Virus record (IMG/VR): IMGVR_UViG_3300007352_000001 | Coordinates: 1-64,000 of that record | DNA length: 64,000 nt | Direction: 5' to 3' (one strand) | Shown here: positions 49,164 to 63,435 of the stretch, piece after piece | Position numbering within the stretch: position 1 is the stretch's first letter | How the letters are laid out: each line of letters begins with the position of its first letter | Notes under the pieces: generated by a model | The model's input: only the letters and a program-made list of their open reading frames with translations | What the model was told of the DNA's origin: nothing | Databases searched by the model: none | Program-made: the position numbers and the translations under genes

Positions 49164-49241
49164 CGGGGTGTAGGGCAGCCAGGCCAGCCCACCTGCCTTG
49201 GGAGCAGGTTGCCGCAGGTTCAAATCCTGCCACCCCGACCA
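49164..49241 (+). tRNA. tRNA-Pro(TGG), CCA encoded
   Basis: Acceptor CGGGGTG/CACCCCG; anticodon arm CCTGC-CTTGGGA-GCAGG; GGTTCAAATCC T-arm. Confidence 0.93.
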
Positions 49242-49242
49242 T

Positions 49243-50037
49243 CTAGGCGACGACCCGATCGACGCGCTTCACGGGCGCATCAACGGCGTAGAGCGGTGAC
49301 AAGTGCCGCGGCTTCATGGTCGCGATGAAGTGCTCGCGCCAGCCGCGGGCAAACGCATCGAGATCCTCGATCGACTGCACCACGAGCTGTCCGTGCGCCG
49401 CGTGCCGGATGCTGGTGCGCACCACCTGCTGCGCCAGCTCGTGCGCTTCGCTCCAGGTCGCCGTGCGGCCGAGGTAGGTGTCGATGCGCTCCCAGAGCTG
49501 CTCGCGCTTCTCGGGGGGAATCACCCGAGCGTGTCGATCCAAGGCTGAGGCCGACCGGATGGCCTTGCCGCGGGTGCGGTCCTCCTCGGAGACGTCCTCG
49601 ACCGGCGCGCCAGGCTTCGGGATGTTCAGTGCCGCGGCGATCTCACAGCGGCGCTGATGGGCGAGCTGCTCGTAGCGCTCGTGGCAGTCGACACAGAGCG
49701 CGACGACGTCGTACGAGTTTCGAGAGCCCAGGCGGTTGGGAAACCACCGCCGGTAGCAGTACGGCACGATGTGGTGCTTGGTGAGCCGCTCAGTGACTCC
49801 ACAGACGGCGCAGTGGTTCGCCCGCGGCAAGAGCATGTAGGCGTTGCCCTTGTCGCCCGGACCGTTCGGCTCGAAGGTGAGCCGGATCTGCTTGTCGCCG
49901 ACGTACTCGGCGAGGTTGTTGCGCAGGTAGAAGTTCACCTTGCGCTGTGATGCTCGACACAATGGCTCCCCCTCACGGGTGAGGATCAACCAGTTGTCGA
50001 ACAGGACCCCCCGCCTCGCCTTCAACCGCCACCGCAT
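49243..50037 (-). CDS. HNH-like protein resembling the EXD2 C-terminal domain
   Basis: G.PLC....K..FY, RLTFEP, CAVCG, HHIVPYCYRRWFP, NSYDVVALCVDCH, HG..VV, WREHF..MKPRHL. Confidence 0.75.
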   Translation of the reverse strand: MRWRLKARRGVLFDNWLILTREGEPLCRASQRKVNFYLRNNLAEYVGDKQIRLTFEPNGPGDKGNAYMLLPRANHCAVCGVTERLTKHHIVPYCYRRWFPNRLGSRNSYDVVALCVDCHERYEQLAHQRRCEIAAALNIPKPGAPVEDVSEEDRTRGKAIRSASALDRHARVIPPEKREQLWERIDTYLGRTATWSEAHELAQQVVRTSIRHAAHGQLVVQSIEDLDAFARGWREHFIATMKPRHLSPLYAVDAPVKRVDRVVA

Positions 50038-52379: not shown

Positions 52380-52966
52380 ACGAACGCTTCTTCGATCGCT
52401 CCGGGCCAGATGGGCTCGAAGGTGGGCAGGGCGGGGTCGCTGGCGGCTCTCCTAACTCCGAGTTCTCCGGTGGTGGCGCGAACAGCCAAGCCGGTCGTTG
52501 TCCGAGCTGCAACGCCAACTTCCCAGTCGACGATCCGAACCGGACGACGTTCTGCCCTGAGTGCGGGCAGCAGCGGCAGGGCGTGGTGGCGACGGCGGCA
52601 GCCCAGCAGCGCGGCGGGTGGGGCGTCTACGGCACTGGCCGGCCGGGCTATCTGCGTGTACCGGGCGGGCCGATCTCGACCAATGAAATGGCCGGCAAGC
52701 TCCGGCTCAAGTATCTCGGCGGCAATCTCTTCGAGATGGAGATGCAGGGCGCGACGCTCGAACACGCGCTCTCATCGTCGCACTCGGTGATGTCGCATCG
52801 CCTGCGGGCTCTTGGTATGAACCAGGATCGCGTGATGCAGACGCTGATCCACTGGCTCTTCAACGAGGCCAAGGCGGGACAGGAGTACGTGTGGGATCTC
52901 GCAGGCGGCACGCGTATGGTGGTCGACGAACGCGGTTTTCGTCGCCACGTCGAAGTTTCGGAATAA
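52373..52966 (+). CDS. zinc-ribbon hypothetical protein
   Basis: CPSC...CPECG. Confidence 0.65.
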   Translation: MVNERFFDRSGPDGLEGGQGGVAGGSPNSEFSGGGANSQAGRCPSCNANFPVDDPNRTTFCPECGQQRQGVVATAAAQQRGGWGVYGTGRPGYLRVPGGPISTNEMAGKLRLKYLGGNLFEMEMQGATLEHALSSSHSVMSHRLRALGMNQDRVMQTLIHWLFNEAKAGQEYVWDLAGGTRMVVDERGFRRHVEVSE

Positions 52967-53199
52967 CCGACGACTTCGACGACGTCCCGGAGTTGAACAG
53001 CCTCCCGAAGCTCGACATCGAGTTCGCCCCGCCGGTGAAGCGCCGCTCGCGGCGACTCGACGGCTGGACGCACCAAGACAGACCCTTGCGTGTCGAGGGC
53101 GTCGCCCCACCAGCAATCGACCGGCGCAAGCCGTTGCGCCGCGGACAAGTCGGCTACGCCTCGCGTGGCCGGCGCAAGAGGACGATCGACGATGCGTGA
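52963..53199 (+). CDS. small protein with GQVGYASR motif; apparent ATA start
   Basis: In-frame ATA overlaps the upstream TAA (ATAA); fills the gap exactly. Confidence 0.4.
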   Translation: MTDDFDDVPELNSLPKLDIEFAPPVKRRSRRLDGWTHQDRPLRVEGVAPPAIDRRKPLRRGQVGYASRGRRKRTIDDA

Positions 53200-53707
53200 T
53201 GTCTCCGCGGCGATCAGTGCGATTCTCGACGGCGCGGCCGTGCCGGTGATCGCCGAGGCGATGATGCGCATGGGCATGGGTGCCCCGCCGCCGGTCAACA
53301 CCGGCGCCACCGGCGAAGCCGAGGATCGCAAGCACGCCGCGTGGATCGAGCCCAACGGCCGTACGCACGTGCTCGGCAGGGAAGAGATTCACGGCGACTG
53401 GGCCACGGCACGGCCCGAGATGTGGCCCAAGCGAGCGTACGCGGTCTACCGCGCCGCGGCCGGCCGCGGCGACGACACCTACCACGACGAATCGCGGCAA
53501 ATGAGCCGCATGATGAAGGCCGGGTGGGTGCGCAAGGCTGGCGCCGCCGCGTACCACGTCCACGCCCGCGAGCAGATCCCACGGGTCCTCGCCCACGTGC
53601 GCCGCTGGCATCCAGACGTCGACGAGTTCCATGTCGACGTCGGCTCGCCGAAGATCAAGACGACGGTCACGATGAACGCGCACACCGGGTGGCCGGTGCG
53701 GAGGTAG
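53192..53707 (+). CDS. helical tag plus W-x-x-P-x-G domain protein
   Basis: AAISAILDGAAVPVIAEA; AWIEPNG...H..W...AGWVRK. Confidence 0.7.
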   Translation: MRDVSAAISAILDGAAVPVIAEAMMRMGMGAPPPVNTGATGEAEDRKHAAWIEPNGRTHVLGREEIHGDWATARPEMWPKRAYAVYRAAAGRGDDTYHDESRQMSRMMKAGWVRKAGAAAYHVHAREQIPRVLAHVRRWHPDVDEFHVDVGSPKIKTTVTMNAHTGWPVRR

Positions 53708-53715
53708 ACTGACTC

Positions 53716-55266
53716 ATGCCCATGGACGCTTCGCCCTACCAAGCTCAAGGACCGGGTGACCCGAGCGCAGGCGCGGGGCCTCCGGCGTCGCAGAATCCGC
53801 CGCCGCCAGGCCCACCACAGGTCCCTGGGGCGCCGGATCCGCGCATGCAGCCGTTTGGGCAGCAGGCGTCGCCCGGCAACTTCCTGCAGCAGATCCGACA
53901 GTTCTCGGCGGACTGTGCCCAGGTCGAAGAGATCGTCACCGAGCTGCAGAAGCTCCTGCTGCAGATCAAGATGTCGATGCCGCCCGATCGCGTCGAGGCC
54001 ACGACCCAGGCGATGGGGCAGCTGCTCGCGGCGCAGTCTGGGCTCACCGGTGCTCGCATGGTGCTGGAGATGGCCACGATGCCGCAGCAGCAAGCCGGTG
54101 CCGGCGGTGGCGGTGTGCGAGAGGACAAGACGCCCGAGCCGACGACGTTCACCGCGCTTGTCGAACAGGCGGGCAAAGCAAAGTTCGGCCTGCCTCATGC
54201 GCCGCGGCGCTACACCTGCCAGGACTGCGGCCAAGAGCAGAAGATCTCGACCAACCACACCGACGACGTATCGGACTACTGCCGCGGCTGTTCGTGGAAG
54301 CCGTCGTTCGGCAAGACGGGCCACAACATCCCCGCGCTCGGTGGGCATACCTACCGCCGCTTCTCCTACGTCGGTGAACTGAAGGAATCCGCCGATGACA
54401 TCGAGCGCACGCTCGGGGTTGGTCGCTACGCTCGGCCGCAGACCGCCGCTGATCGCAAGCTCATCCGCGACTTCCTGGCGCCGAACACGACGGCAACGGC
54501 AGATGCATGGGCACGCCGGCCGGCCGGTCCGGTGACCACGCACGCCCGCTCGCCGTTCCAGCTGTCGATCCAGAAGACCGCCCTCGGGAAGAAAGGCGGC
54601 GTGCACGAAGCGCTCGCGACGACCTCGCACCACATGAGCGGGGGCGGTGGCACCGCGACGCAGACGCTCACCATCCCTGAGCGCGAGTACCAGATCCGCG
54701 AGTTCACTGACGGGCCGGTCACCCGTTACGAGCTGTCGCGCATCGGCAATGACCTACGGGCGCAGGTGCCGATCTACGTGTTCCATGACCAGAAGACCGG
54801 CGCGTGGAAGTCGACGCTTTTCCAGGAAGACGACGGAGGCGGCGATCGCCACGCCGAGCTGGTGAAGCGCTGGCTCTTCCAGGGCCGGCCGGCACGCATC
54901 ACCGACGCCATGGAACCGGTTGGCGGCTCGCCGCCAGCGTGGCCGTTCATGGACAACGACGGCTACGAGCGGCCAGGCTTCCACTCGACCCAGCGGCCGG
55001 TGGGAATCCCCGATCCAGGTCCGGGCCAGGGGCACTATGCCGAGTCGTCGTTCGGCGCGCTTGTTGACGAGACCAAGCGGTTCTCGAAGAGCGAGGTGGT
55101 GGCGTCGCTGCGCCAGCACGCACAGGACATCCGCGACGGCAAGATCAAGACGCGCTCGCCGAACGATGAGCCGCACACCATCATTGGCCCCGACGGCAAG
55201 CCGCACATCCCTCGTGGCCGTGTCGGGGCTGCCTCGCGCGTGCGCGTGAAGAAAGGCCGCGTATGA
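53716..55266 (+). CDS. multi-module protein (Pro/Gln-rich N-terminus, zinc ribbon, FxALV[DE] linkers, C-terminal GRVGAASR)
   Basis: GGAGG RBS; CQDC...CRGC; VRED, LKES, VHEA linkers. Confidence 0.7.
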   Translation: MPMDASPYQAQGPGDPSAGAGPPASQNPPPPGPPQVPGAPDPRMQPFGQQASPGNFLQQIRQFSADCAQVEEIVTELQKLLLQIKMSMPPDRVEATTQAMGQLLAAQSGLTGARMVLEMATMPQQQAGAGGGGVREDKTPEPTTFTALVEQAGKAKFGLPHAPRRYTCQDCGQEQKISTNHTDDVSDYCRGCSWKPSFGKTGHNIPALGGHTYRRFSYVGELKESADDIERTLGVGRYARPQTAADRKLIRDFLAPNTTATADAWARRPAGPVTTHARSPFQLSIQKTALGKKGGVHEALATTSHHMSGGGGTATQTLTIPEREYQIREFTDGPVTRYELSRIGNDLRAQVPIYVFHDQKTGAWKSTLFQEDDGGGDRHAELVKRWLFQGRPARITDAMEPVGGSPPAWPFMDNDGYERPGFHSTQRPVGIPDPGPGQGHYAESSFGALVDETKRFSKSEVVASLRQHAQDIRDGKIKTRSPNDEPHTIIGPDGKPHIPRGRVGAASRVRVKKGRV

Positions 55267-55631
55267 GCTTCCAACGGCTCGTCGACCAAGTCATCGAGTC
55301 TGACAAGGACCCGTCGCACGCCAAGGCGCCGTCGCTCGGGCAGATGAGCAGTCAGTTCTCCTCGCGCTTGCGGATGCCAGGGAAGATGCCACGGCTCGGC
55401 AGCCTCCGGCCTGGTACGGGCCGCGCGCTCCCGCTCGCCAACCTCCGACCACAGTTGCACCAGGGCCAGCACGCGATCCACGGCCCTGGGGACCTCAAGC
55501 CGAAGTTCCGTTTCCACTCGCAAGCGATCGCCGGGCGCGTCGCGCAACTCCTCTCGATGCGCTCGAAACAGAAGCACGAAGTCCGGTTGAGTCCAGTGGC
55601 GCAGCGCCATCCTTTCGCGCCAACGGGCTAA
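55263..55631 (+). CDS. basic protein with N-terminal MSFQRLVDQVIES
   Basis: ATGA coupling. Confidence 0.6.
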   Translation: MSFQRLVDQVIESDKDPSHAKAPSLGQMSSQFSSRLRMPGKMPRLGSLRPGTGRALPLANLRPQLHQGQHAIHGPGDLKPKFRFHSQAIAGRVAQLLSMRSKQKHEVRLSPVAQRHPFAPTG

Positions 55632-55768
55632 CCACCAGCCGACGGCCTGCTCTGCCCAGCTCGCCGACCCGGCGCGTCCTGCGGGAGCGCCCTCCCCCGG
55701 CGCTCCCGTAGTCGACCTGTTCAGCACGGGAGGCTTACCCGTGCGGCAGCACCAACGGAGACAAGCAC

Positions 55769-56662
55769 ATGGCGCTGCTGGACATCTTCCGTATCTACGA
55801 TCGGCACGTGGTCGACTTCGTTCGACACACCGTGAATCCGATCATCACGCAGTTGGACGTCGATGTCAGTGACGACGTCTCCTTCGCTTCGCCCGAGCGT
55901 CCCTACGCGGCTCGCGGCAACAATCCCCAATCTCGTGAACAAGCAGAACGCACCAAGCACGTCTCCGGCCTGATCGGAGACTTCCAATACGACGACCTGG
56001 TCGGCCAGACCGAGACGACGATCGACGAGCAGCGCGGCGTGCAGACCTTTGCCACGCCACGAGTGTCAGTCACGCGGCTCACCTGGCAGTTCTCCTCCGC
56101 ACGCAACAACACCGTGCCGGTCCGCCGGCTCCGGGTGTGGGATGCGGACGGCAAGCAGAACTTCTACCTGCAGACCGCCAAGGGCATCCGTCCGTGGGAT
56201 CTGCACTACCAGCTCGACTTCCAGACGCGCTTTCGCGAGGACATGAACCAGCTCCTGCGCTGGTACCTGTACCACCCGGACCAGACCTACTCGATCCAGG
56301 TGGACTTCCGGTACCCGTGGGGCTTCAAGTCCATCCCGCTGCAGTTCGATCAGATCGTCGACAACTCCGACATCGAGACCGGCGAGAAGGAACGCGCGAT
56401 CCGCTACACCATCCCCATGACCGTTGAGGGGTGGATGCTCGAAGCGTACGAGACCGAGCGGGACATTCCGTTCGACTCGGTCGCGCCGAACTTCTGGCTC
56501 ACGCAGAAGACCCGCATCGCCAAGACGGTCTGCATTCAGCACGCGCTGGCGTCGTTCGACGCCGCCGGCAACGTGCGCTCCTCCACCATCATCGAGCTGC
56601 CCGAGACGTGTTTCTCCGGAAGCACCATCGCGCTCCAAGGCAGTGGGAGCACGACGATCTAA
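55769..56662 (+). CDS. tail terminator/sheath stabilizer (T4 gp15-like)
   Basis: FASPER, PRVSVTR, PWDLHYQLDF, DMNQL, RYTIPMTVEGW. Confidence 0.7.
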   Translation: MALLDIFRIYDRHVVDFVRHTVNPIITQLDVDVSDDVSFASPERPYAARGNNPQSREQAERTKHVSGLIGDFQYDDLVGQTETTIDEQRGVQTFATPRVSVTRLTWQFSSARNNTVPVRRLRVWDADGKQNFYLQTAKGIRPWDLHYQLDFQTRFREDMNQLLRWYLYHPDQTYSIQVDFRYPWGFKSIPLQFDQIVDNSDIETGEKERAIRYTIPMTVEGWMLEAYETERDIPFDSVAPNFWLTQKTRIAKTVCIQHALASFDAAGNVRSSTIIELPETCFSGSTIALQGSGSTTI

Positions 56663-57162
56663 TGCGCCCCTCCGATCTCACCAAACAGGTCCACCGTGCG
56701 CTCAAGGAAGAGTGGGACCGGTTGAAGGAGCAAGAAGGGAAGAAGCTCGCGCGCGAGTTCAAGAATGACCTGCGCACGCGCATCAAGCTCCAGGCCTTCA
56801 CCAGCTGGGTGCCTCTCTCACCCGAATACAAGAAGCGCAAGGAGAAGCTCGGGCTCGACCCGCGCACGCTGATGGCACGGGGCGACTACGTCAACTCGAT
56901 CCGGATCCGCCGCACAACCGAGAACACCTACGTCGTCGACGTGCCGCAGACCGTCAAGCACTACTCCGGTCTCACCTACAAGGAGCTGGCGGCGGTGCAC
57001 GAGTACGGCAGCAAGAAGGCGCACATCCCGGCTCGGCCGCATTGGCGTCCCACCATCCGTCGCTACCAGGCTCGCAAGCGCGAGCTGGAGAAGGCGATGC
57101 AGGAGAAGCTCGTGCAGCGGGTCGAGAAGCGCGTGAAGGCCTCGCTCAGCGGTGGGAGCTAG
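56662..57162 (+). CDS. tail completion/neck protein (HK97 gp10 / virion morphogenesis-like)
   Basis: WVPLSP.Y..RK, AAVHEYG...HIPARPHWRP. Confidence 0.75.
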   Translation: MRPSDLTKQVHRALKEEWDRLKEQEGKKLAREFKNDLRTRIKLQAFTSWVPLSPEYKKRKEKLGLDPRTLMARGDYVNSIRIRRTTENTYVVDVPQTVKHYSGLTYKELAAVHEYGSKKAHIPARPHWRPTIRRYQARKRELEKAMQEKLVQRVEKRVKASLSGGS

Positions 57163-57737
57163 AGCGCGACCAGGAGCCCGGTAGAGACGATCAGGATCAA
57201 CACGAAGAGCATCACCCAACGGGTTGCAATGATCCGAATGCTGATGTCCTGGCCGAAAAACTCCGTGCTCTTCTTGCGACGACGCTGCCCGTCGACCGGC
57301 TCTAAGACGATGCTCTTGATCAGGCACATGCGCCGGAAGAAGTAGACCCACATCGGCACGAAGGTCGCCAAGAACAGGACGCCAATCACGACGTGCAAGA
57401 TGTCCTCGCCCGCCACCTTCCAGACGATCAGGGCGAGCGTGACCTTGCCGGTTGTCGAGGCTAAGAACTGGTCCGCGGCCACGCCCAACTCTTTCGCCAC
57501 CGTGGTGAAAGCGAGAGCGATGTCCTTGCCGAGCTGTGCCCAGTCGCTCACGCGTTCAGGGGTCAGTGCGCCGAGCGCGTTGGGGTCTACAGTCGGGGTG
57601 GAACGCATCCGCTCAGCCTGCTGGGCCAGGTCCAGCTTCTGCATCTCTGACAGCCCGCTCGTGTCAACGGTGACAGCAGCGAATGCTCCACTGCTGAACA
57701 CCAGGGCTCCTACGACGATCGCCACCGTCATCCTCAT
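57159..57737 (-). CDS. membrane protein with signal peptide
   Basis: Signal peptide plus 2-3 TM segments; ATGA coupling to pyrE. Confidence 0.7.
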   Translation of the reverse strand: MRMTVAIVVGALVFSSGAFAAVTVDTSGLSEMQKLDLAQQAERMRSTPTVDPNALGALTPERVSDWAQLGKDIALAFTTVAKELGVAADQFLASTTGKVTLALIVWKVAGEDILHVVIGVLFLATFVPMWVYFFRRMCLIKSIVLEPVDGQRRRKKSTEFFGQDISIRIIATRWVMLFVLILIVSTGLLVAL

Positions 57738-58294
57738 CGCTGTCCTCCATCCTCTTCTCGGCGAAACGCTTCGATGTCGCTCTTCGTCACAAGCGCGGTG
57801 CAGGGGACGTCCAGCTCGTCCTCGATCCGGCGTCGCCCACCTTCCTCGCGGTCAACGCACGCGAGCACCATCAAGACCTTCAGTTGCGCGGCTTTGCATG
57901 CTGCCGCCGCTCGTAGCACGCTTCCACCGGTGGTGATCACGTCCTCAACGAGGATCACGCGGTCGTTCGGTCGTGTCGGGCCGGTGATGACGCTGGTGTC
58001 GAGCCCGTGGTCCTTGGGCTCGCGGCGTACGCTGAACCAGTAGAGGTCCGGGCACAGTGCGAGCACCGCAACTGCCATCGGGTCCGCACCGAGCGCCGGC
58101 CCGCCAACGCCATGGGCAGAGCCAGGGAGTGGACCAATCAGGTCGACCAGCGCCGGCATGATGTCCCCGCGGCGCAGCGCCTTGCTGGCGTCAATCAAGA
58201 CGGGGCTACGTCCACCCGAGGACAGCTTGAAGTCGCCCGTGCGGTAGGAGAACGCGGCGAGTGCTGCCAGGAGTCGTCTTCGGCTCGGATTCAT
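57734..58294 (-). CDS. pyrE: orotate phosphoribosyltransferase
   Basis: GDFKLSSG, VRREPKDHG loop, VILVEDVITTGGS PRPP motif, VDREEG; GAGGAG RBS before ATG 58294. Confidence 0.88.
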   Translation of the reverse strand: MNPSRRRLLAALAAFSYRTGDFKLSSGGRSPVLIDASKALRRGDIMPALVDLIGPLPGSAHGVGGPALGADPMAVAVLALCPDLYWFSVRREPKDHGLDTSVITGPTRPNDRVILVEDVITTGGSVLRAAAACKAAQLKVLMVLACVDREEGGRRRIEDELDVPCTALVTKSDIEAFRREEDGGQR

Positions 58295-58306
58295 GGCTCC
58301 TCGAAA

Positions 58307-58379
58307 TGTCCCCGACGGGAATCGAACCCGTGTTGCCGACGTGAAAGGCCGGTGTCCTAGACCGCTAGACGACGGGGAC
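58307..58379 (-). tRNA. tRNA-Glu(TTC), no encoded CCA
   Basis: GTCCCCG/CGGGGAC acceptor; CCGGC-CTTTCAC-GTCGG anticodon arm; GGTTCGATTCC. Confidence 0.92.
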
Positions 58380-58384
58380 TGAAG

Positions 58385-58466
58385 TGCGAAGAGGGGGAGT
58401 CGAACCCCCACGGATTGCTCCACTAGGCCCTCGACCTAGCGCGTCTGCCAGTTCCGCCATCCTCGC
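58385..58466 (-). tRNA. tRNA-Leu(GAG), long variable arm, C at position 33
   Basis: GCGAGGA/TCTTCGC acceptor; CTAGG-TCGAGGG-CCTAG. Confidence 0.88.
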
Positions 58467-58507
58467 CAATGCTGTCAGAAAACTGTGCTGGTTTTTCTGA
58501 CAAGGAG

Positions 58508-58592
58508 TGCGCGGAGAGGGACTTGAACCCCCACGCCGTGTGGCCGGCAACAGGTTTTGAGCCTGCCGTGTCTGCGATTCCACCATCCGCGC
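58508..58592 (-). tRNA. tRNA-Leu(CAA), long variable arm
   Basis: GCGCGGA/TCCGCGC acceptor; GCAGG-CTCAAAA-CCTGT. Confidence 0.92.
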
Positions 58593-59150
58593 TTACTGTC
58601 CATTCCACCCGGCCGCAGTGATCTCGCCGCGGTGTTCGTGCAACATCTCGTTGAGCGGGAGGATCGGCTCTTCTCCCACCAGCTGCCGTTTCATCAGTCG
58701 ATCGTACAACAGCACGTTCACCGCTGCACTCAAGTTCAAGCAGTGGAAGCTCGGGATGTGGACGAAGCGGTGACAGAGTGTGCGGTACGCTGGCGGCACG
58801 GCGCCGTCTTCCGGACCAAACACGTAGACTGGGCGCGCCGGATGCTCGAAAGTCGTCAGCGGCTCTGAGTGCTCAAAGAGATCGACGCACACCGGCGTGC
58901 AGTCCACCGGCAAGGCGTCGAACGGCCGCTCACTACGCTGCCAGTTCACGGCTGCGTACCCTTTCATGCGTTCCTCACGTGGCAGGCGTTCGTACTCATC
59001 GCCGGTCACACGAGTGCCGGTCCAGAAGAGGGTCGATACGCCGAAGCACGACAGCGCGCGGATCGCTGCGCCAACGTTGTGCGAGTACTTCGGGTCGACC
59101 AGGACGACCGCAGGAACCTCCAACCGTTTCATCGTCACACCAGCGGACAT
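58593..59150 (-). CDS. SPOUT (SpoU/TrmL-like) RNA 2'-O-methyltransferase
   Basis: VVLVDPKYSHNVGAAIR, FGPEDGA, VHIP..CLNLSAAV..LLYD; single domain; start at 59132, 59150 or 59159. Confidence 0.88.
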   Translation of the reverse strand: MSAGVTMKRLEVPAVVLVDPKYSHNVGAAIRALSCFGVSTLFWTGTRVTGDEYERLPREERMKGYAAVNWQRSERPFDALPVDCTPVCVDLFEHSEPLTTFEHPARPVYVFGPEDGAVPPAYRTLCHRFVHIPSFHCLNLSAAVNVLLYDRLMKRQLVGEEPILPLNEMLHEHRGEITAAGWNGQ

Positions 59151-59313
59151 CGTTCGCATAGCTCTGTGTTGGTTGTCAACGCTGAGCTTCCGCCCGTCCC
59201 CTAACCTTCGCGCTCTCTCATTCGACTCCATGTGACCGAACCATCCTTGGGCGGATGGGTCGGCCTGCCCTGATGGCGTTGGGAGAGGCGACCACCACAG
59301 GAGGGGTGCGCCT

Positions 59314-61068
59314 ATGGCCACCGCATTCGTCTCTCCCGGTGTGTTTGTCCGGGAGATCGACCAATCCCTGTACGTCCGGCAGCTGTCGGATACGTCTTTG
59401 GGAGTGGTCGGTACCGCCAGCTGGGGTCCGGTCAACGAACCGCAGCTGATCACCAGTGTCAACCAGCTGCTCAACACCTTCGGTCCACCACTCGGACTCG
59501 ACACGAGCAACGCCTACGGCACCGCCGTCCACCCGATGATCAACACGGTCATGCGCTACCTGCGCAAGGGTCGTCGCGCGTGGGTCGTACGTGTCGAGGG
59601 GTCGGGCAGCAACTCGGCCGTGGAAGCCAACGTCGATCTCTACGCGATCGCCGGATCGGGCTCGGGGCCGTCGATTGCAGTGAACGCCAAGCACGGCGGC
59701 ACCTACGGCAACCAGATCCGCCTGCGGATCTCGAACGGCACGATCACTGGCCGCAAGAAGCTGACCGTCTACCTCGGCTCGCCGAACGACGCCGCGGTCC
59801 TGCAACAGGTCGAGACGTTCGACAACCTGAAGAAGACCAACGAGGCGGCCACCGCGACGACGTCGACCGACGTCGACTCATGGCTGACCAAGATCAACGG
59901 CGTCTCGGCGTACATCGAGGTCGCGCAGGGTGGTGACATCACCAACCAGCCCGACAACGTGAACCAGTCCGAGCCGGCGTCGGCGGGTCTCCAAGACGCG
60001 TCCGATCTCACCAACTCGGCCGATCAGCTCGACACCAACGACACGTTCTACAGCTTCGCGAACGGCGCCGACGGTGTGGGGCAGGTCTCGGACTCCGACT
60101 TCATCGGCACGCCGACGGGCGGGCCGAACGGGCAACCGTCTGGTCTGCACTGCTTCGACAACGCGGAAGCGTTCGTCGTCAACGTGCTGGCCGTGCCGGG
60201 CGCCCAGAAGCACTTCAACTCGACCGAGCACATCCGGCCGGGGCACACGTCGGCCATCGTCAACGCCCTCCAGTCCGTCTGCCTGATCCGGCAGGACTCG
60301 ATGGCACTGGTCGACCCACCGATCGCGCTCACGCCGACGCAGGTCGCGCACTGGCACAACGGCGACTTCAACCTCGACGGCACCGACGAGTCGGCGGCGT
60401 TCAACTCGAACCTCCTGGCGCTCCACTACCCGTGGGTCCAGGTGTTCGACGAGTTCACCGGCACCAACGTCTACCTCCCGCCATCGGCGTTCGTCGCCGA
60501 GGCGATCGCCAACACGGACTTCGTCTCGGATCCGTGGTTCGCACCGGCTGGTCTCAACCGTGCCCGGATCGAGGCGGCGATCAAGGCCGAGCGCACGCTC
60601 ACCCAGGGCGAGCGCGACTTCCTCTACTCGGGCGGCAACGTCATCAACCCGATCGCCACGTTCCAGGGCACCGGGCTGGTGATCTGGGGACAGCGCACGA
60701 TGCAGCGGCAAGCCACCGCGCTCGACCGCATCAACGTGCGCCGCATGCTGCTCATCCTCCGCAAGCTGATCGCCACGGCGTGTCAGTCGCTCGTCTTCGA
60801 GCCGAACGACGCGACGCTCTGGCGGCGTTTCCGTGGCCTCGTCTCGCCGTTCTTGGAGGCGGTGCAGAACCGCCGCGGCATCACGCAGTTCCGTGTGATC
60901 TGCGACGAGACCACCAACACCCCTGACGTCATCGAGCAGAACCAGATGATCGGGAAGATCTTCATTCAGCCGACCAAGACGGCTGAGATCCTGGTCATCG
61001 ACTTCGTGCTGACGCCACAGGGGGCGCAGTTCCAAGAGATCGTCCAGTCGCTCGGCGGCTCGGTCTGA
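59314..61068 (+). CDS. gp18: tail sheath protein (T4 gp18-like)
   Basis: FVSPGVFVREID, WGPVNEP, PWFAPAGLNR, WGQRT, RINVRR, FEPND, PTKTAE. Confidence 0.97.
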   Translation: MATAFVSPGVFVREIDQSLYVRQLSDTSLGVVGTASWGPVNEPQLITSVNQLLNTFGPPLGLDTSNAYGTAVHPMINTVMRYLRKGRRAWVVRVEGSGSNSAVEANVDLYAIAGSGSGPSIAVNAKHGGTYGNQIRLRISNGTITGRKKLTVYLGSPNDAAVLQQVETFDNLKKTNEAATATTSTDVDSWLTKINGVSAYIEVAQGGDITNQPDNVNQSEPASAGLQDASDLTNSADQLDTNDTFYSFANGADGVGQVSDSDFIGTPTGGPNGQPSGLHCFDNAEAFVVNVLAVPGAQKHFNSTEHIRPGHTSAIVNALQSVCLIRQDSMALVDPPIALTPTQVAHWHNGDFNLDGTDESAAFNSNLLALHYPWVQVFDEFTGTNVYLPPSAFVAEAIANTDFVSDPWFAPAGLNRARIEAAIKAERTLTQGERDFLYSGGNVINPIATFQGTGLVIWGQRTMQRQATALDRINVRRMLLILRKLIATACQSLVFEPNDATLWRRFRGLVSPFLEAVQNRRGITQFRVICDETTNTPDVIEQNQMIGKIFIQPTKTAEILVIDFVLTPQGAQFQEIVQSLGGSV

Positions 61069-61741: not shown

Positions 61742-63313
61742 TCACTCGGTCAAATACGCACGGAAGCGTATGCGATCGCCGTACACCACTTCGAGTTCGT
61801 GCCCGTCGGGCCAGCGCTCTTCTGCGCGCGGTGCCCACGGCAGATACCGACCGAGGAAGAAGAACGCCGCTGGCGGGGTGACATCGCCCCAGGCGCCATC
61901 CTCGGCCGCACGAAACTCGCGCGATCGGTCCCGTGCATCCAAATCCCCAGCAAGGAAGCGGAGCGTCTCGTAGTGCACGCTCCAGCGGTCGGAGAAGAAG
62001 TTGACCTGCGTGCCCGCCGGCAAGGTGACCACCTGCTCGGCGAAGAGCCGCAGTTCGGGTGCAAAGACGTGCTCGGCCTCTTCGGTCTTGAGCGACGCCG
62101 GGTAACGCAAGATGTCCACCGCGGCACTGAGAGCGAGAATCGCCCCGAGCGCGGCCGTCCACTGGTAGCGCTTGGAGTGCCACAAGGCGCCGAGCGGCAG
62201 CGCCGCCAGGAACGCGATGAACGGCGCGAGCGCCAGCGTGCGTCGGAAGTCGCCGTTGCCAGTGGTCAGGATCGCTCCCCACGGGAAGATCAAGACAGCT
62301 GCGCAGCAGACGGCGCACGCCCAGTCGAACCGGCGATGCCAAGCCAGCACGAAGCCGACAGCGGCGGCGATCGAGATCAGTGGGTTGATCGGTGGGAAGC
62401 CTGGACTGGACAGGCCGTCACCGAAGTCTGGGCGCCCGCCAGCGAGAAGCCCAACAACGAACTTCCCTAGCTCGGCGATGATGAGCGCCACGCGCTCCCA
62501 CCAGTGCGCCGCGGCCAGCCACTCCTCGGACGTGAAGATCATCAGGCCGGAAGCGCGGTTGAAGTACTGCTGTGGGTTCTCGACCGCATACAAGATCATC
62601 GGCACCACCGCGGTGCTCACCGCCACCGCGAAAATGGTCGCCCGCGCCAGGTAGCGATCAGACGGCTCACGGATTTTCGCCAGCACGAACATAGCCGCGT
62701 AGAGCGCAAAGGTGAGTGGATAGGCGTTGTACGTGTAGATCCCCAAGCCTGCGAGGAACCCCGCGGCCAGGGACAGCCCTGGGTGCGCACGGGTACGCAG
62801 CGCGTAGGTGAGCACGATGCAGGTCGCCAGCATCACCAGCGGCCAACTCGCCACCATGTAGCCGGTGCGGCTCAGGTGGAAGTGCCACGGCATGCACGCC
62901 AGCAGGAAGGCGGCGATGGTCGCCTGTGGGCGTGAGAACCAGAGCAACCCGAGCACGTAGGTGAGCACCACCGTGGCGATACCGAGGACCGCGATCGCCC
63001 CACGCAGCGTCGTCATCGAGACACCGAAGACAGAGAAGACGGCGGCGACCCAGTAGAGCGGCCCGGCCGGTTGCCCCAGTCCGCTGGGGTAGACGTAGGG
63101 ACCGATCCAGCCTTCGTCGAGGATGCGCTGGGCATCGAGCCCGGTGAGCGCCTCATCGCCGTGGAGACCGAACGGCACGTCGCCGATCCCCACCAAGCGG
63201 ACCAGTGCGGCGAAGACCGCCACCACCAGCCCCAGGCTGATGGTCAGCGCCCGCTCCCGCGTCGCCGTCGCCACCCCTGCCTGCGCCGGGGCGGCGGCAA
63301 CCCGAAACATCAT
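61742..63313 (-). CDS. GT-C fold membrane glycosyltransferase (GT39/ArnT-like)
   Basis: LVRL..G.VP.GLHGDEA, many TM segments, PWHFHLSR, GIYTY. Confidence 0.85.
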   Translation of the reverse strand: MMFRVAAAPAQAGVATATRERALTISLGLVVAVFAALVRLVGIGDVPFGLHGDEALTGLDAQRILDEGWIGPYVYPSGLGQPAGPLYWVAAVFSVFGVSMTTLRGAIAVLGIATVVLTYVLGLLWFSRPQATIAAFLLACMPWHFHLSRTGYMVASWPLVMLATCIVLTYALRTRAHPGLSLAAGFLAGLGIYTYNAYPLTFALYAAMFVLAKIREPSDRYLARATIFAVAVSTAVVPMILYAVENPQQYFNRASGLMIFTSEEWLAAAHWWERVALIIAELGKFVVGLLAGGRPDFGDGLSSPGFPPINPLISIAAAVGFVLAWHRRFDWACAVCCAAVLIFPWGAILTTGNGDFRRTLALAPFIAFLAALPLGALWHSKRYQWTAALGAILALSAAVDILRYPASLKTEEAEHVFAPELRLFAEQVVTLPAGTQVNFFSDRWSVHYETLRFLAGDLDARDRSREFRAAEDGAWGDVTPPAAFFFLGRYLPWAPRAEERWPDGHELEVVYGDRIRFRAYLTE

Positions 63314-63435
63314 GGTCGGCGCGTAGCATACCTCTTCAGCTTTTGTCCAGCACCACCTCACCACCCCACCACACTGACGGCACCGGTCGTCATTAACCGC
63401 GGCCTTTTTGTGAGCCGCGAAGCGAGGTCACCCGC

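Follow-up and report, generated by a model that had tools for sequence, protein, structure and literature searches.

The TrmL enzyme of Escherichia coli makes Cm34 or cmnm5Um34 at the wobble position of tRNA-Leu(CAA/UAA), depends on N6-isopentenyladenosine at position 37 (i6A37) and does not modify G34. Defences that cleave tRNAs, among them PrrC, retron effectors, PARIS, VapC and Cas13, are an increasingly prominent theme, and the known phage answers to them are repair, replacement tRNAs and loop mutations. In bacterial RNA repair by Pnkp/Hen1, a 2'-O-methyl group at the cleavage site makes the tRNA immune to transesterifying ribotoxins. In mitochondrial tRNA punctuation, tRNAs directly flank open reading frames (ORFs), and their excision by RNase P and RNase Z defines the ends of the mRNAs. 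Here we examine a gene for a SpoU-family protein, a predicted RNA 2'-O-methyltransferase, whose stop codon abuts tRNA-Leu(CAA) in the IMG/VR virus record IMGVR_UViG_3300007352_000001. The window, by which we mean the whole stretch of 64,000 nucleotides (nt) that was analysed, is the first 64 kb of this one 241,426-bp record, and the genome-wide results cover the whole record. Our preferred reading, to which we give about even chances, is that the gene encodes a phage tRNA 2'-O-methyltransferase co-transcribed with tRNAs in a tRNA-punctuated operon. The genes concerned are as follows (window positions; lengths in amino acids, aa):

58593..59150, minus strand: SpoU-family (PF00588) RNA 2'-O-methyltransferase gene, 185 aa, with ATG at 59150 and TAA at 58595-58593
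58508..58592, minus strand: tRNA-Leu(CAA), class II (ARAGORN; Infernal 51.9 bits), discriminator A
58384..58466, minus strand: tRNA-Leu(GAG) (ARAGORN; Infernal 44.2 bits), loop UCGAGGG with C33 for U33
58307..58379, minus strand: tRNA-Glu(UUC) (ARAGORN; Infernal 62.5 bits), 4 nt after tRNA-Leu(GAG)
57734..58294, minus strand: PyrE-type orotate phosphoribosyltransferase gene, 186 aa (TIGR00336, phrog_32468)
57159..57737, minus strand: predicted membrane protein gene, 192 aa, the last of the cassette (phrog_19575, E=5e-20; hydrophobic segments)

The junction reads ...GGACAG TAA and then GCGCGGA..., with a gap of 0 nt between the stop codon and G1 of tRNA-Leu(CAA). ARAGORN and Infernal (Rfam RF00005, model positions 1-71) both place the 5' end of this tRNA at 58592, with their calls for the 3' end one base apart (58507 vs 58508). 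The preliminary description of this DNA was thus exact on the flush junction, and correct also on tRNA-Leu(GAG), tRNA-Glu(UUC) and the PyrE-type gene that come next on the minus strand. The SpoU gene has a third-position GC content of 0.77, and alignment with homologues suggests an alternative start at ATG 59132. The anticodon loop of tRNA-Leu(CAA) is CUCAAAA (A36-A37-A38), a spacer of 40 nt leads to tRNA-Leu(GAG), and none of the three tRNA genes encodes CCA. Past the discriminator base of tRNA-Glu, the ATG of the pyrE-like gene follows after 12 nt that contain GAGGAG, and the TGA of this gene overlaps the ATG of the next (ATGA). Its product scores 105 bits with TIGR00336 (cut-off 106.8), shares 30% identity with E. 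coli PyrE over the full length and keeps the phosphoribosyl pyrophosphate loop. Separately, the D-loop of tRNA-Leu(CAA), AAUCGCAG, lacks a G18-G19 pair, so that the G19-C56 contact usual at the elbow would be missing; its Infernal score is nonetheless as given above.

Judged by its sequence, the gene product is a SpoU/SPOUT ribose-methyltransferase-type protein with intact catalytic motifs. It matches Pfam SpoU_methylase with 61.9 bits (cut-off 29.7), which places it in the superfamily; none of N25, R31, E114, D115 and G116 varies among 40 homologues, and N139 is kept in at least 90% of them. An AlphaFold (AF2) model built on the 40 homologues, with a predicted local distance difference score (pLDDT) of 87, has the SPOUT fold. 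The SPOUT domain begins at residue 13, with no N-terminal extension, and the hallmark of the family is an arginine-rich insert, RLPREERMKGY (residues 55-65), nearly invariant across the alignment. After residue 157 comes a tail of about 35 aa, and the C-terminus of the closest members ends in GW(D/N)GK. We propose that the product is an S-adenosylmethionine (SAM)-dependent RNA ribose 2'-O-methyltransferase of a distinct SpoU clade marked by this insert.

By profile, fold and tree the protein is about equally far from TrmL, TrmJ, TrmH and RlmB. The family profile matched TrmJ (5e-6), TrmH (1e-5) and TrmL (1e-4 to 2e-2) in the PDB, all weakly and similarly, with Pseudomonas aeruginosa TrmJ on top, while hhalign scores with single E. 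coli references were 42-56 throughout, the best overall being a Terriglobales TrmJ. Foldseek, run with the model, gave probability 1.0 and template modelling (TM) scores of 0.6-0.68 for TrmH, TrmJ, TrmL and AviRb, and its E-values (about 1e-9 to 1e-8) were alike for these and for TARBP1, so that no preference emerged. In a maximum-likelihood tree, which is unrooted and has only E. coli proteins and Terriglobales paralogues as references, all 40 members of the family group together (SH-aLRT 93) on a stem of 2.6 changes per column. E. coli TrmL, TrmJ/YjtD together with its Terriglobales orthologues, and TrmH/RlmB/YfiF fall outside this clade; the branch of E. coli TrmL is very long, and the branching order between subfamilies is not resolved in this tree.

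The curated subfamilies were each tried and rejected. The best curated match is TrmJ/YjtD, whose model TIGR00050 is matched by 39 of the 40 members (best E 5e-13); the phage protein reaches 38.6 bits with it (cut-off 167.15) and has the 35-aa tail only, the C-terminal domain of about 80 aa being absent. TrmH (Gm18, PRK11081) is matched by 10 of 40 (best E 7.7e-5), and the phage protein has no N-terminal extension. For the RlmB/TsnR type, TIGR00186 gives 15.3 bits (cut-off 160), and the N-terminal L30e-like RNA-binding domain is absent. TrmL, the identity given in the preliminary description, falls to several tests at once: TIGR00185 gives 15.5 bits against a cut-off of 190.6, 32 of 40 members match it weakly (best E 7e-10), and a length of 185 aa, the conserved insert and the C-terminal tail rule out a minimal SPOUT protein of about 155 aa. 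The phylogeny that had been suggested as a check among TrmL, TrmH and TrmJ likewise leaves E. coli TrmL outside a separate clade.

A word search returned 3,425 relatives of about 180 aa each, many labelled 'TrmL' in the JGI pipeline and 'TrmH family' at NCBI. In IMG/VR the family occurs at 47 loci, mostly on contigs of 40-545 kb, many above 100 kb and one of 13.6 kb, and 43 of these 47 phage records carry tRNAs, mostly 23-40 in records that are at least 90% complete. No PHROGs family matches the SpoU protein. GenBank phages hold a single member (LR756511, 595 kb, uncultured), with no tRNA nearby, and one distant match in Mycobacterium phage WXIN. Among 185,579 species genomes there were 481 matching stretches; the 80 listed all lie in metagenome-assembled genomes (MAGs) from many phyla, and the closest bacterial relatives among the matches listed belong to MAGs of Terriglobales (soil Acidobacteriota), at 61-66% identity. 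In the unrooted tree the Terriglobales chromosomal copies are nested among phage copies, not the reverse. Overall, the clade is carried mainly by large, tRNA-rich, uncultured phages, whose tRNAs mostly number 20-50. Each of five Terriglobales genomes with the family has a TrmJ of its own, which passes the curated cut-off in three of them and narrowly misses it in the other two. All five encode several further SpoU paralogues as well, and no TrmL above the curated cut-off was found in them. The neighbourhoods of the bacterial copies are chromosomal and poorly conserved. Their sole conserved neighbour is a gene for a BCS1-like AAA ATPase, directly downstream in 10 Terriglobales loci (e.g., L052:1417-2688; L numbers designate our loci), and two genes downstream of one copy, in a Sulfotelmatobacter MAG, there is a TROVE/Ro60 gene (L002:8338-9663); neither neighbour bears on function.

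In several branches of the tree the homologue is found within tRNA arrays, in the same orientation. Across 39 non-redundant records, all 93 tRNAs within about 4 kb of the gene are co-oriented with it. The tRNA that directly follows the homologue varies from locus to locus:

L008: tRNA-Arg(UCU), gap 0
L032: tRNA-Ile(GAU), 10-nt overlap
L034: tRNA-Gly(GCC), 21-nt overlap
L106: tRNA-Cys(GCA), gap 1

A tRNA-Leu(CAA) directly follows the gene only in the present phage, and L013 has one 1.6 kb off. The recurrent theme is therefore a place inside a tRNA array, not one beside tRNA-Leu, and the proposal that the cassette pairs an enzyme with its canonical substrate is not favoured, since the partner in relatives is Arg, Ile, Gly, Cys or none. 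The substrate class would most likely be tRNA, whether the phage's, the host's or both, and the specificity would be wider than tRNA-Leu or other than it. As a side observation, the arrays of the homologues in L040, L041, L043 and L049 hold, about 2 kb downstream, a tRNA with a CUA anticodon (amber-suppressor type; 'Pyl' in ARAGORN), which hints at TAG recoding in those phages.

Flush junctions are also found elsewhere in this genome, which has 24 tRNA genes in eleven clusters. Beside the one at the SpoU gene we found the following, and Infernal confirmed the zero-gap tRNA borders at tRNA-Ser(GCU), tRNA-Trp and tRNA-Phe (genome positions):

104788/104787 (L141), minus strand: 327-aa ORF with a SAM-lyase/DUF3293 domain; TAG, then G1 of tRNA-Ser(GCU)
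154571/154572 (L142): 275-aa ORF; TGA, then G1 of tRNA-Trp
127795/127796 (L143): 73-aa ORF with a coding-like GC pattern; TAA, then G1 of tRNA-Phe
116099/116098 (L147): doubtful fifth junction, at tRNA-Ile, with a frame that is not clearly coding

The other co-oriented ORF-tRNA gaps measure 38-84 nt with nothing between 0 and 38, a bimodal distribution. Four of nine gaps are exactly zero, for which the binomial p lies between 1e-6 and 6e-4 when the per-junction probability is set at 1-5%. The flush junction is thus beyond chance, yet it is not particular to the SpoU gene: ORFs stand flush with tRNA genes recurrently, as a genome-wide habit and not as the mark of an enzyme-substrate pair, and unrelated genes of the same genome share the zero gap. 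At the other end, the next start codon follows 6-18 nt past the last tRNA in five clusters. In related phage loci a gap of 0 is the commonest single value (4/80), and short gaps are generally common. A literature search found flush punctuation of the stop-tRNA and tRNA-start kind reported for organelles, with no report for a phage.

From this layout we infer that no separate transcription signals serve the punctuating tRNAs of this genome and that operon RNAs are cut at the ORF borders by RNase P and 3' processing. The SpoU gene would be the first of a 2.1-kb accessory operon that continues with tRNA-Leu(CAA), tRNA-Leu(GAG), tRNA-Glu(UUC), the PyrE-type phosphoribosyltransferase and the membrane protein. 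Since the gene is co-oriented and contiguous with the three tRNA genes, cleavage by RNase P at G1 would give the methyltransferase mRNA a 3' end right at its UAA, as the preliminary description expected. At the far side, once 3' processing had released tRNA-Glu, which encodes no CCA, the next gene would keep a leader of 12 nt with only its ribosome-binding site.

Several features of the genome may point to conflict over tRNAs. Three of its tRNAs have C33 in the Infernal alignment:

tRNA-Leu(GAG), window 58384-58466: loop UCGAGGG
76-nt tRNA with anticodon UGA, genome 133107-133182 (L143:7114-7181): loop CCUGAAA
tRNA-Ile(GAU), genome 233565-233640 (L145:2566-2640): loop CCGAUAA

U33 is near-universal in tRNAs, and the C33 loops may serve to evade nucleases that cut beside U33. 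In the related loci that carry the SpoU gene, 10 of 106 tRNAs are likewise without U33 (nine with C33, one with A33). The genome also encodes an RtcB RNA ligase (273 bits, genome 160875-162158) and a Rnl2-type RNA-ligase-like ORF (28.8 bits, genome 137067-137612). Phage tRNAs are reported to escape host tRNases through changes in the anticodon loop (van den Berg et al. 2023, PMC10264068), and some huge phages carry genes for modifying and ligating tRNAs (PMC7162821); the C33 loops and RNA ligases of this phage fit both reports. A search of the genome found no second SpoU gene and no CCA-adding enzyme, though the cassette tRNAs are without encoded CCA, and no linkage of the SpoU gene to RtcB was seen. 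The tRNAs themselves have an ordinary reason in codon use, with UUG, CUC and UUA making up 15.8%, 39% and 0.4% of the phage's Leu codons. Nucleases that act by transesterification require the 2'-OH, so it is plausible that a ribose methyltransferase would have a shielding role, and the case for the SpoU enzyme protecting tRNAs from anticodon nucleases is by analogy and circumstantial. A further observation concerns the tRNA at genome 110444-110517 (L141:7446-7518, minus strand; Infernal 52 bits), which has an 8-nt anticodon loop, CUCUGGGU, and a 4-base anticodon in ARAGORN; its candidate identities are Pro, Gln and a frameshift-suppressor type.

Of the preliminary description's overall reading, a ribose-methyltransferase-type gene contiguous with tRNAs stands, joined by other signs of tRNA conflict, whereas the TrmL identity and the canonical pairing are not supported. 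A fuller version of our preferred reading holds that the SpoU clade 2'-O-methylates the anticodon loops of many tRNAs against host anticodon nucleases, that with nuclease-insensitive C33 tRNAs and RtcB repair this makes up a three-layer counter-defence, and that the mRNA is released and timed by RNase P at the stop-tRNA junction; we put this forward as a tentative and rather improbable extension.

Several points weigh against a tRNA-directed enzyme in a tRNA operon. Sequence, fold and tree do not discriminate between an rRNA and a tRNA target, since SpoU enzymes include methylators of rRNA. The 93 tRNAs near the gene compare with 36 expected from whole-record density, a 2.6-fold enrichment that is descriptive, its null being the density of the record irrespective of tRNA clustering. 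In about two thirds of the phage loci the gene has no tRNA within 3-4 kb, and 70 of 80 MAG loci have none within 3 kb (three of the ten that do are phage-like tRNA arrays). Linkage to tRNAs is thus frequent and not defining, and tRNA arrays are plastic regions that gather accessory genes. A scan for promoters and terminators recognised none, and a search of public sequencing runs returned three DNA runs only (5-9% of words) and no RNA run. Finally, the ORF flush with tRNA-Ser(GCU) (genome 104788-105771; L141:1792-2772, minus strand) contains the S-AdoMet-lyase/DUF3293 domain at 29.7 bits (cut-off 28), and a SAM-lyase-like domain, if co-expressed, would work against a SAM-dependent methyltransferase; for a single genome to encode a SAM-degrading enzyme and a SAM-dependent one is odd, unless their expression is separated in time.

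The record carries direct terminal repeats; CheckV puts its completeness at 100%, and its GC content is 65%. The phage is a giant one of soil type, and its tail sheath, gp15-like and tail-completion genes mark it as contractile-tailed (myovirus). The cassette is set among these genes as follows:

56431..57162, plus strand: tail-completion/Neck1-like gene, flank (phrog_222, phrog_26, phrog_5)
57148..59307, minus strand: whole cassette, a moron-like accessory module of about 2.1 kb between the plus-strand tail-completion and sheath genes
59151..59313, no strand: divergent intergenic region between the SpoU and tail sheath genes, presumed by position to hold the cassette promoter
59314..61068, plus strand: tail sheath gene, flank (Phage_sheath_1C and Phage_sheath_1 matches)

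The real start of the tail-completion gene probably lies 3' of 56431. No sigma-70-like site was recognised in 59151..59313, and a search with 11-mers from the region upstream of the SpoU gene brought up no promoter motif that recurs in the phage. L153, the only close relative found, has a sheath protein of 58% identity, and by tblastx window 52694-57147 corresponds to L153 55-4938 and window 59308-60927 to L153 4995-6647. Between these collinear blocks L153 has 57 nt only and no tRNA; the flanks are collinear and the cassette has no counterpart there, therefore the whole minus-strand unit is an accessory insertion. Movement of the cassette as a unit was considered and rejected: the pyrE-like gene lies beside no homologue, and the membrane protein has one weak match, at L003. 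Two other observations were made in the window. Just past the sheath gene a 540-aa multi-pass membrane protein is encoded (61745-63364, minus strand), which is odd for a tail module and has a borderline PMT_2 glycosyltransferase match (25.9 bits vs 26.1). Next to tRNA-Pro(UGG) at 49164-49241, a convergent ORF (49243-50037) lies 1 nt past the 3' end of the tRNA; it has a weak HNH-endonuclease match (phrog_8446, E=1e-5) and may be a homing endonuclease beside a tRNA.

Methylation of rRNA in the manner of RlmB or TsnR, for example to tune host ribosomes or to protect from ribotoxins or thiopeptides, is an alternative that we consider unlikely; the gene would then have come to lie beside tRNAs as a hitch-hiker in a plastic accessory region. 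The SpoU superfamily does contain rRNA 2'-O-methyltransferases, and the RlmB and AviRb/TsnR structures match as well as those of tRNA enzymes, but the N-terminal RNA-binding domain of RlmB, TsnR and AviRb is absent from a 185-aa protein whose SPOUT domain starts so early. Most homologues lie away from tRNAs and the nearest are in soil Acidobacteriota, whereas the phages that carry the gene are strikingly rich in tRNAs, and in several branches of its tree it turns up again, co-oriented, in tRNA arrays.

It is also conceivable, though again we doubt it, that the adjacency is meaningless, with a host-derived SpoU paralogue acquired as a moron and the zero gap a product of genome compaction. This would suit a cassette that is accessory, missing from L153 and not conserved in content, and the short gaps common around tRNAs in related phages. 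Plain compaction does not, however, predict the bimodal gaps. The nearest relatives are indeed in Terriglobales MAGs, but those copies are nested within the phage copies of the unrooted tree, and in a family that exceeds 3,400 proteins the motifs are strictly kept.

A TrmL orthologue making Cm34 on the adjoining tRNA-Leu(CAA), so that the cassette would deliver enzyme, canonical substrate and nuclease-resistant tRNA, is very improbable: the JGI labels, a tRNA with C34 and the A36-A37-A38 context needed for i6A37, the good use of UUG and the room for a TrmL-like role in the five Terriglobales carriers favour it, and the failed TIGR00185 cut-off, the higher PDB ranks of TrmJ and TrmH, the indifference of hhalign and Foldseek, the position of E. 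coli TrmL outside the clade, the insert and tail, the differing neighbour tRNAs of relatives (several with G34) and the zero gaps at unrelated genes all stand against it.

A phage enzyme that shielded tRNA by chemical means would add a fourth answer to tRNA-cleaving defences. The family, for which there is no characterised representative, offers a concrete, testable candidate for such shielding, and the automated 'TrmL' labels on it are not supported. The flush stop-tRNA and close tRNA-start junctions point to tRNA processing as a means by which some large phages may divide operons into mRNAs.

Compared with TrmL (YibK/CspR), the phage enzyme belongs to the same PF00588 SPOUT alpha/beta knot superfamily, is similarly small, has the three SAM/catalytic motifs and, as modelled, matches 4JAL with a Foldseek probability of 1.0 and a TM score of about 0.62; it differs in its 11-residue conserved insert and its C-terminal tail, and is no closer to TrmL than to TrmJ, TrmH or RlmB. 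TrmJ/YjtD, which makes Nm32 in tRNA, is marginally the best match everywhere, and the phage enzyme resembles it in having an N-terminal SPOUT domain followed by a tail, but it lacks the C-terminal domain, and its family forms a separate clade and occurs in Terriglobales that keep a TrmJ of their own. The phage tRNAs of PMC10264068 are similar in their anticodon-loop deviations, here C33 in the Leu(GAG), Ile(GAU) and UGA-anticodon tRNAs; that work concerns sequence changes rather than enzymatic methylation and does not discuss C33.

Pnkp/Hen1 offers, by analogy, a precedent for a protective 2'-O-methyl group, and this phage too has an RNA ligase (RtcB). Hen1, however, is a Rossmann-fold enzyme that acts on the broken end during repair, whereas the phage enzyme is of the SPOUT class and would act pre-emptively on intact tRNA. 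Mitochondrial punctuation differs in its setting, since here we deal with a double-stranded DNA phage served by bacterial processing enzymes, in which only some genes would be punctuated and the stop codons are complete, with no need of polyadenylation to finish them; what the two share is the layout, with four or five zero-gap stop-tRNA junctions in the phage and start codons 6-18 nt after its tRNAs.

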